Assembly: GCA_964106645.2 (NCBI GenBank)
Contig: OZ067040.1
Origin: Podarcis pityusensis
Lineage: Eukaryota
Length of the DNA stretch: 64,000 nucleotides
Strand: one strand, 5' to 3'
Positions 58,442 through 64,000 of the stretch are shown here, in pieces (positions within the stretch are counted from its first letter, which is position 1; each line of letters opens with the position of its first letter). The position numbers were made by a program, and so were the translations under genes. The notes below the pieces were generated by a model, which was not told the origin of the DNA, made no database searches, and saw only the letters and a list, made by a program, of their open reading frames with translations.

Positions 58442-58950
58442 TACTTTAGCAGAGTTTAATTCATTTCTGCTAAGGCAGCTGCTTGCAGGAATATTGAGGG
58501 GTTGTGGAGATAATGTTTGATAAAGGATTTCCTTGCATATCACTCCATCCATCTGACATATTCTCTATCCAAGGGGGAATATGGGAAGAAGTAACAGTAA
58601 CTTAGATGAGATGTAAATTAGATTCCAATGTCCCTTGAAGTATTGATTTACACTTATGGAAAGAGATGTATCAATTACAAATATAGCTCAAACAAATGTT
58701 TCACCTGCTTTTTCCTGATATTTTGAAAATTTTGCCAACAAAACAACAACTCATTAGGAAATATTGGTGACTCAACTTGGGAAATCCTGCATGCAGAACA
58801 ACTGCTCTACCAGTGAGCCATTTATTTACTTATAGGATTCCTGAAGCAGATTTTTCTCAGATGGTGTTGTTCCACCACTTAGTGGAACAATAATGTATAA
58901 TGTATGACATTGTTACCATGGGGTAACATTACAATAATTTAACGCTTGAT

Positions 58951-58982
58951 GATGACTTCCTATTTCCATCTTCCCTTCACAG
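58951..58982 (+). promoter_or_regulatory. FUT9: Splice acceptor of the FUT9 coding exon
   Basis: cttcctatttccatcttcccttcacAG|ATCAAATTATG. Confidence 0.85.
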
Positions 58983-58990
58983 ATCAAATT

Positions 58991-60067
58991 ATGACATCAT
59001 CACCCAAAGGAATTTTCCGGCCATTTCTGTTTATCTTCATTGTGCTGGGATGCTTCATGGCATGTCTGCTTATTTATATCAAACCGACAAACAGCTGGAT
59101 ATCTGGTCCCATTGAATCAGCCAGCTCTGTTCTAAAAATGAAGAACTTCTTCTCCACCAAAAATGATTATATCAATGAGACAACTATTCTGATATGGGTA
59201 TGGCCGTTTGGCCAGACATTTGATCTGAAATTCTGCCCAACATTTAACATCCACGGGTGCCATCTGACTACAGACCGCACACTATATAACCAGTCTCATG
59301 CCGTTCTTATTCACCACAGAGATATCAGTTGGGATCTGACTAATTTACCTCAGCAACCTAGGCCACCATTTCAAAAATGGATCTGGATGAACTTGGAATC
59401 ACCAACACACACTCCACAAAAGAGTGGGATTGAGCATCTATTCAATTTGACCCTCACTTATCGTCGAGATTCAGACATTCAAGTGCCTTATGGCTTTATG
59501 GTAGTTAGCACAAGCTCCTTTCCATTTGAAATGCCGAATAAAGAAAGACTGGTGTGTTGGGTGGTGAGTAACTGGAACCCAGAGCATGCTAGGGTCAAAT
59601 ATTATAATGAACTAAGTAAATACCTTGAGATCCATACCTATGGACAAGCATTTGGAGACTATGTGAGTGATAAAAATTTGATCCCAACCATCTCCGCTTG
59701 TAAGTTTTACCTTTCCTTTGAGAATTCTATCCACAGAGACTATATCACAGAGAAGCTTTACAATGCTTTTCTTGCTGGATCTGTGCCAGTCGTTCTAGGT
59801 CCTCCTAGAGAAAACTATGAGAATTACATCCCTGCTAGTTCTTTCATTCACGTGGAGGATTTTCTCTCTCCAAGGGACCTCTCAGAGTATCTTCTTTTGC
59901 TCGACAAAAATGATAAACTGTATGTTAGCTACTTCGACTGGAGGAAGGATTTTTCAGTGCACCTTCCTCGATTTTGGGAATCACATGCATGCCTTGCCTG
60001 TGACCATGTAAAAAGACACCAGGAATACAGGTCGGTTGGCAATTTAGAAAAATGGTTTTGGAATTAA
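58991..60067 (+). CDS. FUT9: Alpha-1,3-fucosyltransferase 9 (GT10, Lewis x synthase), 358 aa, single coding exon
   Basis: MTSSPKGIFRPFL followed by a TM segment. Motifs VLIHHRDI, WMNLESP, VVSNW, KFYLSFENSIHRDYITEKL and the C-terminus LEKWFWN match FUT9. Polypyrimidine tract and CAG acceptor 8 nt before the ATG. Confidence 0.98.
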   Translation: MTSSPKGIFRPFLFIFIVLGCFMACLLIYIKPTNSWISGPIESASSVLKMKNFFSTKNDYINETTILIWVWPFGQTFDLKFCPTFNIHGCHLTTDRTLYNQSHAVLIHHRDISWDLTNLPQQPRPPFQKWIWMNLESPTHTPQKSGIEHLFNLTLTYRRDSDIQVPYGFMVVSTSSFPFEMPNKERLVCWVVSNWNPEHARVKYYNELSKYLEIHTYGQAFGDYVSDKNLIPTISACKFYLSFENSIHRDYITEKLYNAFLAGSVPVVLGPPRENYENYIPASSFIHVEDFLSPRDLSEYLLLLDKNDKLYVSYFDWRKDFSVHLPRFWESHACLACDHVKRHQEYRSVGNLEKWFWN

Positions 60068-61356
60068 ACTCCTATCCCTTACTTGCACTTTACATATATA
60101 TTTTTAAAATCTAACAAAACCATTATTCCAAGTGAAGATGGTGGGGGGAATCCCTCCAGAATATGTGACATCTTTGTTTCCTGGATACAACATATTCCAG
60201 TTACACTATCTCTGGATCATTCATCCAAAACTCTCCTTACTTTCCACAGAAAGGTATCTCATTAAAAAAGACTAATGATGTCACGGACATTGGCCATGTT
60301 CTGTGTTGTTGACTTATTTGGAGAGTTGATCATTTTATTTTATATAGATGTGACTTTGAAAAGGAATTAAGAGCTGGCAGCCTGAACAGAAGTTTAATTA
60401 TTTTGTTAAAGCAATCAGCGCTATGGTGACTTCTTGTTATATTTTCATCAAATGCAAACACAAATATCATTTTTTGCAATGTGTACTGAGAAAAACTGAG
60501 AAGTAACTTATGTGGACACTTATTAGAGATCTGTATGTGAAACTGGTGCACCATGGTTGCACAAATTATTCCTCCTGAGCCACTGGCATGCTATCTTATT
60601 TATATTTTGTTGGAAATCCTGCTATGTATATAGCTGGTTATGTGCACTGAATAGTAATTTATTGTTTACCATTTCTTTTTAAAACTTCCCCCCATTTTTT
60701 ATTTGTTTGTAATACAGCAGTCACTGGCCAATACATAGAGTAATGGTGTTTACACTGGCTCAGATAGTTTCTTTCTGGGAGAAAACAGGCTTAGAAAAAA
60801 AATTAAAATTTCTAGCTAAGATTCAATATAGGATTCAAAGAAAAAATATTTGTGAGTTCAACTCTTTAGTGAAATACACATGTGACCTTCTATGCCATTT
60901 TATATACTGCGTACAAGGTACAGTTCCAAAAGCAGTTTTCTATGAAGCATGGAAGGCTTCTACTGAGTAAAAATAAGTCTAAAGACCCGTTTAGCTCATG
61001 GAACTAGTTTCCTAATTATTTGAAATCTGGCCTTGGTAAACAAATACATTTTTTTAAAAATGTGCATTTTCCTCCATCTACTCTAGAATGCTAGTTGATT
61101 GACAAAGTGAACATTTTCTATCCTTGGCGAAGTATTAAGTGGCATGCTTTGAAACCACACAGTCAGAATTAAATACGAACTGAGTGCTTTGTTGAAATGA
61201 AGATTCAGAAGGCAGCAAATGAAAGTCTGTTTCCATTTGGGGACAAAGGAAGCAGCTTTATACCAGGTAAGACTATTTGTCCATCTAGCAGAGGCTGTTC
61301 ATCATTTCAGGATGCAGAAATATTTCCACATCAACTGCTACCTGATGCTTTTAACT

Positions 61357-61431
61357 GGAGATCCCACCAGTTCAGCCTGGGGCCTTCTGCATAACAAAGC
61401 TCATGCTCCACTTCTGAGCTTGGTCCCTCCC
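61357..61431 (-). mobile_element. Degenerate tRNA-derived SINE head
   Basis: cctggggccttctgcat...tgctccacttctgagct...ccctcc resembles a reversed squamate SINE head. A similar fragment lies at ~58776-58820. Confidence 0.4.
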
Positions 61432-61709
61432 ATAAGCAATAAGCAATCTTTTTTGTTGTTGTTTATCTGATAGGACCACTGTTTCAACAGTAGGTAGATA
61501 TTTTATCTAATGCCTTGAAAAGAGTAAAAGATTTATCAGTTAGGTGACAATCTTATACCTGGGAGTAATCACCACTGAACTAAGTGGGACTTCTGGGTAG
61601 CTGGGTGCACAGAATTCTATTTACAGATAGGTAGCCGTGTTGGTCTGCCATAGTCAAAATAAAAAAATCCTTCCAGTAGCACCTTTAAGACCAACTAAGT
61701 TAGTTCTTG

Positions 61710-61748
61710 GTATGAGCTTTCGTGTGCAAGCACACTTCTTCAGATACC
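61710..61748 (-). ncRNA. Minimal hammerhead ribozyme motif (tandem copy A)
   Basis: Minus strand GGUAU CUGAAGA A GUGUGC-UU-GCACAC GAAA GC UC^ AUAC(C). Confidence 0.75.
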
Positions 61749-61787
61749 TTCCAGTAGCACCTTTAAGACCAACTAAGTTAGTTCTTG

Positions 61788-61825
61788 GTATGAGCTTTCG
61801 TGTGCAAGCACACTTCTTCAGATAC
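61788..61825 (-). ncRNA. Minimal hammerhead ribozyme motif (tandem copy B)
   Basis: Core identical to copy A, 78 nt away. Confidence 0.75.
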
Positions 61826-61831
61826 GAAGTA

Positions 61832-61877
61832 TTTGGTATCTGATGAAGTGTGCTTGCACACGAAAGCTCATACCAAG
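61832..61877 (+). ncRNA. Minimal hammerhead ribozyme motif (FUT9-sense copy)
   Basis: UUUGGUAU CUGAUGA A GUGUGC-UU-GCACAC GAAA GC UC^ AUACCAAG. Predicted cleavage after C61869. Confidence 0.78.
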
Positions 61878-64000
61878 AACTAACTTAGTTGGTCTTAAAG
61901 GTGCTACTGGAAGGATTTTTTTATTTAGAATTCTATTGTTAGCCTTGTATTTCTGACAGTTGCAAATTATCTACTTCTCAGATGTAACCATCTGACAATG
62001 ATTCAGCCATTAGCAGGCTGCTATGATAGGAATATTCAGTCTCAGAAGTGATCCCTGAGCTGTGTGCACAATTAAGACAGTACTGGGACACTTACTGGTG
62101 GGAAATGTTTGCAAATTGCTAGATCAGGCTACAGCTGTTTTGGGCTTGAATTTAAGCCCATAGAATAGAGTTTCTCAGTGGTGATATTAATGCACCTCCC
62201 CTATGTCATTATGTTGTGATGATACTGCAGCCTTTTATTGGGGCACAAATATTTTAAGGTCAGAGATCTAAGCAAACATTTCAGTTCATATTTCTTTCTA
62301 AGTTGATGAATACAAATGCTTTTGATTACTTCATGTTTTAACAATAAACATAAAAGCATGATTATCAAGACCACAGTACAACAGAAGGCTGCAGAATGAA
62401 TCATGAAGGCTGACAGAACCTTTCATCTGTTGGGAAAGTGAAAGAAGAGAAAGCAGGACAGCGACTAGAAGGTTGTCGATGTCTTCAGAGTTGTCAGTGT
62501 TCATTATCTTCCAAAGGGGTTGTGCATACAGTTTGGGAGTTGATGACAGATGTGGTGCTCCATGTTCTCCACACTTTCAGAAGGAATGAGCAGTAGCAGC
62601 CAGTGAGGTGAGGCAGCTTACCTGAATAGCTCTGGGGCAGAGCAGTGGGAAGATAGGGGCTGGCAGAGCCAATCCAGCACTTCCACCAGCACACCTGCAC
62701 AGCCCTAACCTTGCTCCGTCCCTGCCCCAGCACTAGCCAAGTAACCTGTAGCAACACTGGTGTTTGGATGCAAATCTGTGGCACTGCCCCACCACATTGG
62801 CCACTATTGTCAGTGAGCAGAAACCTGATTAAAATGGTGGTTTATTTTGATGGGCAATGGCAATAGAACATTTTGATTTACTTGGATCACATTTATAAAT
62901 GCCCCACATTGTGTGGACTGTTGGCACATAGGATATTGAATATTAGGTGATGGCTTTCTACTTGCAGAATACTATTGCCCCTAAGATACATTGATCTACC
63001 TATATATAGCAAGTCCAATCCATGTGTTTCTTAATGTGTTTGGGGAGAAGCACCCATCCTTCTGTTTCAAAGGGTTTTACATTGTCTCAGTACTTTGTGG
63101 CTAAAATCTATTCCTGTCCTTTTATGAATGTATGAATCGAGGGTTTCGTTAACACTAAATCAATGCAATAAAAAAGAACAGCCTTTTAGGCACTGAAAGT
63201 AGACACTTCCCCTGAGAGAAGGACTAAGCTGTTTGCTTAAATGTATTTTATTAAAAAGGTAAAAATTGTAGGTATTAGAACAGGGGTCCCTGGTGTGGTG
63301 CCCTCAGACACACACACTTGGTGCTCAGCAGGGGCCCCTGCCCATCCTATTGTACAAAGAGGTTTTTTGCTTTGGGGGAGGTTGGGTTGGGGCTCCTGTT
63401 CCTGTAAATTCCATCTACTTTGGGAGAAAGGAGAAAATGTTATAGCTGTTCTTAAACTCCCCATGATAGTGAATGGGGCACACAAAGCTCAATTTTATAT
63501 AAAGTTGCTCAGAAATCAGATTGAAAAGGTGCACAGAACAACTCAGAAACAAATCATTTTTTTTAATGCACAACTACAAGATGATACAAAGCAGTTGAAT
63601 TTGAACCTGCACCCATCTACGAAACTAATATGTCTTTGTGCACAAAAGTTGTGCTTTGAACTCTAAGGCTCACATTTCAGTATGTGATACGTTTACTAGT
63701 CAGTAGAATTCAAAATGAAGCATTACCTTTCTCATATTTCTCAGCAAAAAAAAAAGGAAAAAAAAGAGTTTTGGGGGCAAACATTTGGAATTCATTTTCT
63801 GTCAAGCCCTATTTGATGTCTGCCCATCAACAAAATTAGCAATCATATGAGAGGGAGAGCTAGCTTCAAATCCTCCTATCGTGTCCTTGCCCTTTACCAT
63901 GCATGCATGTGAGAGCATGTCTGCAGAGGACACACCCTCTACACACATGGATTCTCCCCATGATGAAGGGAGATCTGGGTTCCACATTGCAGGAGAACCC

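Follow-up and report, generated by a model that had tools for sequence, protein, structure and literature searches.

FUT9 and its 3' flank

The features described here lie near the end of the window, by which we mean the whole 64-kb stretch of Podarcis pityusensis DNA analysed (from contig OZ067040.1; the window contains no N), and the only gene that bears on them is the following:

58946-60067, plus strand: coding ORF of FUT9 (alpha-1,3-fucosyltransferase 9), assigned by Pfam and PDB

The identity of this ORF was established by comparing its protein with Pfam, where it shows Glyco_transf_10 (GT10) and its N-terminal domain, and with the PDB, where it matches FUT9 (8d0o) with E = 9e-200. The stop codon ends at 60067, and a non-coding insertion begins 1,554 nt further on. 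Since the ORF is FUT9, the three hammerhead motifs contained in this insertion stand 1.6-1.8 kb beyond the FUT9 stop, in keeping with the preliminary description of this DNA, which had placed them downstream of it. The first canonical AATAAA after the stop codon is found at 61658-61663 (plus strand), where it arises from the antisense of the A/T-rich stretch of the inserted element; between the stop and the insertion there are only ATTAAA signals, at 60261, 60802 and 61168. The AATAAA lies 180 nt ahead of the sense hammerhead, and, should FUT9 transcripts extend that far, the insertion could supply them there with a lineage-specific poly(A) site.

Three minimal hammerhead motifs

A 30-nt core of the form CTGA(A/T)GA-A-GTGTGCTTGCACAC-GAAA-GC-T-C occurs in three exact copies in the window, with none expected from shuffled sequence:

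61714-61743, minus strand: core copy, exact 30-nt match
61792-61821, minus strand: core copy, exact 30-nt match
61840-61869, plus strand: core copy, exact 30-nt match

The same three motifs, and no others, were returned from the 64 kb by a minimal hammerhead descriptor of our own, which sets a 4-bp minimum for helix I, requires CUGANGA but leaves a bulge optional, has helix II close with G10.1-C11.1 and calls for GAAA, U16.1 and any base but G at position 17; in 200 shuffles the descriptor found no site. The conserved core (C3-U4-G5-A6-N7-G8-A9, G12-A13-A14, A15.1/U16.1 and a non-G at 17) is present in all three copies, each of which builds helix I from its flanks (type I). The motif reads A-GUGUG-CUUG-CACAC followed by GAAA-GC-U-C, with a helix II of 5 bp in the predicted folds that is closed by G10.1-C11.1; positions 15.2-16.2 are palindromic, and a match requires a bulge of one, the unpaired nucleotide between A9 and G10.1. 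Both the predicted folds and the descriptor give helix I as 5 bp in minus copy 1, 4 bp in minus copy 2 and 8 pairs (7 Watson-Crick and one G-U) in the plus copy, where 3-4 of the pairs are supplied by the spacer at the junction between the inverted copies. The two minus-strand motifs belong to a perfect 78-nt tandem (61669-61746 and 61747-61824), and alignment of the three hammerhead copies shows 78 nt that are identical save for N7, the free core position of the hammerhead, which is A, A and U, respectively. Taken alone, the plus copy is predicted to fold as a hammerhead at -13.6 kcal/mol (z = -2.7).

The three hammerhead motifs are therefore confirmed as genuine and as belonging to the minimal type of Penelope-like elements (PLEs). 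Core matches and descriptor scan bear out the preliminary description in its account of three intact minimal type I hammerheads, of which two form a perfect 78-nt tandem on the minus strand and the third lies on the plus strand, as well as in the CUGAUGA and the helix I pairing that it gave for the plus copy. Its assignment to the PLE class likewise stands on the core, the bulge, the G10.1-C11.1 pair and the 1-bp helix III within the palindrome AGCU. The Infernal hammerhead scan that it had called for, on the other hand, came back empty, as no hammerhead family of the Rfam 15 covariance models (Hammerhead_1, Hammerhead_3, Hammerhead_II, HH9 and HH10 were considered) was found at E <= 10 in 4 kb, in 351 nt or in the 55-nt motif alone. 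This null result is expected, because the motif is devoid of helix III, and the hammerhead call hence depends on the published minimal PLE descriptor. A gapped pattern of the hammerhead with its helix I, when run against metagenome contigs, produced 10 matches, all of them unrelated, GC-rich, bacterial-looking sequences without the element.

Minimal hammerheads of metazoan PLEs were reported by Cervera and De la Pena in 2014 (PMC4209133) and, as cited in PMC6765202, by Lunse et al. in 2016. The four emergent features that Cervera and De la Pena list for these motifs (PMC4209133) provide a direct yardstick for the present ones. As in the published examples, the motifs at the FUT9 locus are of type I with a full core, a G10.1-C11.1 pair and, between this pair and A9, one unpaired nucleotide; helix II is long (5-6 bp) and helix I short (4-5 bp in its native context); there is no real helix III, but only a palindrome A-GC-U able to pair between copies; and copies are arranged both in tandem and on opposite strands at a distance of about 100 bp. 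Nothing essential sets the two apart, although the sequence of helix II and its loop is peculiar to the lizard family.

Anatomy of the insertion

The three motifs are parts of a single 305-bp non-coding insertion, spanning 61622-61926, and not three separate devices. From left to right, the insertion and its borders comprise:

61611-61621, no strand: target-site duplication (TSD), left copy, 11 bp, AGAATTCTATT (direct repeat)
61622-61656, minus strand: 35-nt tail, carried by the minus-sense copy only (alignment; the flanks of other copies diverge at 61621/61622)
61657-61746, minus strand: minus copy 1 (3'-proximal), consisting of the 78-nt unit 61669-61746 and the A/T-rich stretch 61657-61668
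61747-61824, minus strand: minus copy 2, the second 78-nt unit, forming a partial tandem (direct repeat)
61825-61836, no strand: head-to-head junction spacer, 12 nt (the columns before GTATCTGA differ between copies)
61837-61926, plus strand: plus-sense inverted copy, 5'-truncated (repeats, alignment)
61927-61937, no strand: TSD, right copy, 11 bp, AGAATTCTATT (direct repeat)

The 11-bp TSD copies abut both outer ends of the inverted structure exactly, and the left one ends in ATT. In RNA sense, the tail is AC-rich and the 3' end of the element falls at 61622. The complete hammerheads span 61709-61748 in minus copy 1 (C17 at 61714, with a predicted cut at 61714/61713), 61788-61825 in minus copy 2 (C17 at 61792) and 61832-61877 in the plus copy (C17 at 61869), whose helix I happens to be extended by the junction spacer. 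All three copies are truncated in 5' at an identical nucleotide (GUAUCUGA, 10 nt before A9). Read in RNA sense, minus copy 1 extends from that point to 116 nt after A9 (61737 to 61622), minus copy 2 repeats the first 78 nt of the same piece head to tail, and the plus copy has its 3' end 81 nt after A9 (61846 to 61926), which is 35 nt short of the minus-sense 3' end. The two 3' ends are thereby located 57 and 92 nt beyond the hammerhead cut site (81 and 116 nt from A9). The inverted arms, of 82 and 95 nt, are 98% complementary.

No ORF for a reverse transcriptase (RT) or GIY-YIG protein is present in or near the insertion. The CUGAUGA of the plus copy contains an ATG, but it opens a frame of only 28 codons (61843-61929, plus strand), and the minus copies read AAG instead.

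Empty site, age and family abundance

A contig from a sister organism lacking the insertion (organism B), 2,218 nt long and with a single-copy depth of 12.7, joins 60538-61609 gaplessly to 61926-63071. It skips 316 nt, corresponding to the 305-bp insert and one TSD copy, and retains a single TSD copy, which makes it an empty site. The TSD and the matching empty site together establish that an insertion does exist here, and its absence from organism B means that it arose after the split of the two lineages. Insofar as organism B lacks the insertion, the plus-strand hammerhead cannot be a conserved feature of FUT9. The near-identity of the three copies, which differ only at N7, points in turn to a recent event, and the insertion is thus both young and lineage-specific. 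Between the two organisms, the flanks differ at 13 positions (6 + 7) over 2.2 kb, or about 0.6%, and the empty-site contig appears to have a T at 61610, just before the TSD, where the window has C.

The element from which the insertion derives is very abundant in both organisms examined (organism A, represented here by short-read contigs, and organism B). Word depth, which is only a rough guide to copy number, reaches 0.5-1 million (summed) within the element, compared with about 12.7 in the flanks, and hundreds of contigs and reads run off at exactly 61621/61622 into unrelated sequence. Such depth and such run-offs identify a high-copy dispersed repeat with its 3' end at 61622 in minus sense. 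Past the boundaries of the 78-nt unit (61747 and 61825), other family copies continue into a shared but different sequence, with a loose-end agreement of about 0.8. The 78-nt unit must hence be a 5'-truncated end-piece of a longer element, and it is private to this insertion rather than a repeat that propagates as such.

Within this family, the letters that the insertion carries at 61686, 61729, 61807, 61854 and 61897 account for about 30-50% of the word depth in organism A and for about 1% or less in organism B. Taken together with the near-identity of the copies and with the empty site, they point to a young subfamily that has expanded in the lineage bearing the insertion. Three of these positions (61729, 61807 and 61854) fall in the helix II loop, which in most family copies is CAUG and forms part of a perfect 14-nt palindrome, whereas the subfamily of the insertion has CUUG, accompanied by four linked letters (compare also 61686, 61764 and 61897).

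The abundance of the family raises the question of whether the 78-bp duplication, or the whole arrangement, might be an assembly artefact of a high-copy repeat. Tandem and inverted PLE structures are known to trouble assemblies (PMC8557442), and the short-read contigs of organism A break inside the element, none of them bridging the tandem junction or the insertion. The structure is nevertheless bounded by a perfect TSD and matched by an empty site in organism B, its arrangement is exactly what the PLE mechanism predicts, and its three copies share the subfamily-diagnostic letters, all of which makes an artefact decidedly unlikely.

Folding and RNA evidence on ribozyme function

In silico folding of the whole insertion yields a near-perfect duplex of about 95 bp for either strand, at -194.3 kcal/mol (z of -25) for the sense transcript and -189.3 kcal/mol (z of -21) for the minus transcript. 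The cost of adopting hammerhead folds was assessed by enforcing them on these transcripts and on the tandem alone. For the minus strand, the enforced structure was a nested double hammerhead with an outer helix I, both helices II, a 4-bp AGCU/AGCU helix III and a spacer-closed inner helix I; for the sense strand, it was the plus-copy monomer. The resulting energies (kcal/mol) are:

Tandem alone, double hammerhead enforced: -27.1; minimum -42.3; penalty 15.2
Whole-insertion minus transcript, double hammerhead enforced: -120.8; minimum -189.3; penalty 68.5
Whole-insertion sense transcript, plus-copy monomer enforced: -137.6; minimum -194.3; penalty 56.7

Two RNA runs, both from organism B and hence from a species lacking the insertion, show zero depth on 60100-61600 and almost none past 62019. 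Neither run has a pile-up of read ends at 61713/61714, 61791/61792 or 61869/61870, where the reads that are seen come from other family copies. In effect, 98% of the RNA reads on the element continue into unlike sequence, which means that they originate at other loci and are silent on the insertion in the FUT9 flank. In the flanks of the insertion, no antisense promoter and no antisense transcription were seen. The absence of signal in these runs amounts to an absence of support, and not to a disproof.

The first reading on which these data bear is that the tandem on the minus strand works as a double hammerhead within one molecule and frees a 78-nt RNA, perhaps circularised, in the manner of a retrozyme. 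Two intact motifs on the same strand do lie 78 nt apart, an intermolecular helix III of 4 bp could form between their AGCU palindromes, and the nested double-hammerhead fold can be drawn with standard pairs throughout. Moreover, vertebrate retrozymes function as dimeric type I hammerheads (PMC7229834), and a recent preprint describes retrozyme consensus lengths down to 51 bp, derived from the pLTRs of PLEs (10.64898/2026.07.22.740005). Even so, the double hammerhead stands well above the minimum in the tandem alone, and further still once the inverted copy is included; there are only two units, and the unit is private to this insertion; no read ends accumulate at the cuts; and the known animal retrozyme RNAs measure about 170-400 nt (PMC7229834), as opposed to a 78-nt unit. 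The release of a 78-nt RNA from the tandem, as put forward in the preliminary description, consequently appears extremely improbable.

The same can be said of the proposal that the plus copy cleaves the FUT9 3'UTR after 61869 and thereby regulates FUT9 mRNA. In its favour, the core of the plus copy is intact and its helix I is the longest of the three, its orientation is that of FUT9 and its predicted fold in isolation is a hammerhead; furthermore, no canonical AATAAA intervenes between the FUT9 stop and the insertion. In a sense transcript, however, the complementary minus copy would be made first and would pair with the plus copy, so that the hammerhead fold would lie 56.7 kcal/mol above the minimum, and the AATAAA brought in by the insertion itself precedes the plus motif. 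RNA depth is zero over 60100-61600 in both runs, with the reservation that the insertion is absent from the species sampled and that the tissues are unknown. In addition, helix III of the plus monomer is a single base pair and loop-loop contacts are missing, and motifs of this kind display no detectable monomer cleavage (PMC4209133). In view of this evidence, we attach next to no credence to cleavage of FUT9 transcripts at this site.

These considerations agree with what has been published on comparable motifs. Monomer cleavage is undetectable and dimer cleavage low in the minimal hammerheads of metazoan PLEs (PMC4209133). The hammerhead of the Anolis element cleaves only with the element's protein, can be dispensed with for insertion in vitro and shows no RNA-seq ends at its site of cleavage (PMC11167929). 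Because a transcript from either strand is predicted to fold into a long hairpin, the hammerheads at the FUT9 locus are most likely idle.

The hairpin might itself be the active feature, in that a near-perfect inverted repeat of 82-95 bp could, if transcribed, serve as a substrate for Dicer or ADAR, give rise to small RNAs against this PLE family or destabilise the host transcript. Its predicted stability is considerable (-189 to -194 kcal/mol, with z of about -20 to -25), the element family is transcribed somewhere in the genome in both read orientations, and Rfam miRNA precursor models respond to the inverted repeat, with 80 bits for MIR7996 and 63 bits for MIR1222, below their gathering scores. 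Against this, the miRNA matches are sub-threshold, appear on both strands and involve unrelated plant and insect families, which is the response to be expected of any long hairpin. An active role for the inverted repeat is accordingly very unlikely in our estimation.

Candidate miRNA genes at 61750-61913, on both strands, were also considered and rejected. The models concerned (MIR7996, MIR1222, mir-977, mir-2062 and mir-1) are all sub-threshold and most of them match both strands; hence, these matches are long-hairpin responses and not miRNA genes. Head-to-head PLE insertions are, by the same token, a likely source of false miRNA annotations.

Discussion

A probable single PLE integration in the FUT9 flank

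The evidence assembled here argues strongly for a single recent retrotransposition event of a very abundant lizard PLE family, which very probably gave rise to the 305 bp of non-coding sequence inserted 3' of FUT9, with the hammerheads as passengers that are most likely idle. The published hallmarks of PLE insertions provide the main basis for this reading. PLE insertions are strongly 5'-truncated and often form partial tandems (Craig et al., PMC8557442), and the locus presents a 5'-truncated, pLTR-like partial tandem of two perfect 78-nt units. They often come with a directly adjacent inverted and 5'-truncated copy (PMC8557442), and one such copy is joined here to the 5' end. A tail of 30-40 bp at one end, often one-sided, is a further hallmark of these elements (PMC8557442, PMC11167929); the insertion has a one-sided tail of 35 nt and two alternative 3' ends, besides an 11-bp TSD and an empty site demonstrated by the organism B contig. 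Finally, hammerheads typically sit in the repeats of PLEs (PMC8557442). Layout, motif features and the positions of the 3' ends thus lead us to file the locus as a miniature PLE insertion. The preliminary description had seen in the three motifs an arrangement of note at a host gene, but a layout combining a tandem with an inverted copy is a normal by-product of PLE integration (PMC8557442, PMC11167929) and calls for no purpose-built device.

The closest experimental counterpart is Poseidon_Ac (PAc), from Anolis carolinensis, whose enzyme cleaves and extends both target strands in vitro, with a preference for ATT, and initiates reverse transcription internally at two sites of the RNA (PMC11167929). 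The spacing of these start sites corresponds to a tail of about 34 nt, situated roughly at nucleotides 85-119 from the AUG (PMC11167929, text and Fig. S2 legend), an AUG that coincides with A9 of the hammerhead and is also the start of the ORF, and the cut occurs after nucleotide 29 (PMC11167929). This places the ends of PAc about 56 and 90 nt beyond the cut, to be compared with 57 and 92 nt in the insertion, the two ends being about 35 nt apart. In both systems, the start region of reverse transcription follows directly on the hammerhead, AC-rich sequence makes up the 3'-terminal segment and the target is nicked after ATT. As in PAc, the use of both target strands as primers accounts for the inverted copy. 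The PLE assignment is made from structure, motif and 3'-end positions, the match to the PAc start sites being positional only, and comparison by eye of the Poseidon_Ac consensus with the insertion revealed no convincing similarity outside the core. A further difference concerns coding capacity. The PAc ORF starts at A9, whereas here the frame of the plus copy ends after 28 codons and the ATG is absent from the minus copies, and the 3' module must hence be non-coding, or belong to another PLE clade, or stem from a non-autonomous derivative.

A plausible course of events can be outlined on these grounds, with the order of priming and jumping being the one that we infer from the layout. Two nicks by the PLE enzyme, one in each target strand and 11 bp apart, would have provided 3'-OH ends, each of which would have primed reverse transcription of the element RNA. 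From the plus-strand nick (after a sequence ending in CTATT), synthesis would have started at the distal internal start site, running through the tail, the post-hammerhead region and the hammerhead; this cDNA would then have stopped 10 nt before A9 and jumped back, with 78 nt being copied again. From the minus-strand nick, synthesis would have begun at the proximal site, 35 nt further in, and come to the same 5' stop, and the two cDNAs would finally have been joined head to head. Each copy thus carries the minimal hammerhead that PLE families keep beside the start region of reverse transcription.

Comparison with retrozymes and with L1 helps to delimit this interpretation. Animal non-LTR retrozymes (PMC7229834; preprint 10.64898/2026.07.22.740005) share with the insertion the presence of tandem units that each contain a type I hammerhead; their hammerheads need dimerisation, they derive from PLE terminal regions and those that overlap exons tend toward 3'UTRs. 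The insertion, in contrast, consists of just two 78-nt units laid down in one event with an inverted copy attached, and its tandem junction is not common to other copies of the family. The dispersed head-to-tail family and the unit-length RNAs of about 170-400 nt by which animal non-LTR retrozymes are recognised were not found for the unit described here. The twin priming of L1 is likewise similar, insofar as cDNAs from both target strands end up head to head, 5'-truncated and within one TSD. In the present case, however, both cDNAs begin at defined internal sites of the template instead of at a poly(A) tail, and a template-jump duplication is present in one of them, both of these being PLE-specific features.

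Significance of the locus

The locus is the ordinary footprint of one PLE integration and is not special to FUT9, and hammerheads such as these have already been described for this class of elements. Its import for ribozyme biology or for FUT9 is hence small, as it constitutes one more young copy of a known class of transposons. Its value, albeit modest, is to document PLE integration cleanly, as it took place in nature, in a second lizard lineage. Enclosed by one TSD and matched by an empty site, this record preserves priming from both strands, the two internal start sites with their 35-nt spacing, and a template jump, in agreement with the in vitro reconstitution reported for the Poseidon element of Anolis. 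The subfamily letters and the empty site also indicate recent activity of the family, and are of use for transposon annotation and as a population marker.

The 5' stop shared by the three copies, 10 nt before A9, may correspond to a defined 5' end of the template RNA. Going one step further, the mobilised template could itself have been a short RNA, about 126 nt long, whose defined 5' end coincides with the 5' edge of helix I and whose 3' end is that of the tail; it would be a SINE-like, hammerhead-plus-tail parasite of the autonomous PLE. We consider this refinement of the PLE reading unlikely, if clearly less so than the alternatives discussed above; were it true, the FUT9 transcripts of the carrier lineage would gain an AATAAA and a long hairpin as a side effect.

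Upstream of helix I (61746/61747 and 61824/61825), other copies of the family read, in RNA sense, a pyrimidine tract, then CAG and then the 5' strand of helix I. To judge from its sequence, this resembles a 3' splice acceptor whose end coincides with the 5' edge of helix I, which is exactly where the intron of the D. virilis Penelope element ends (PMC4209133), and the acceptor-like sequence may be related to the common 5' stop of all three copies.
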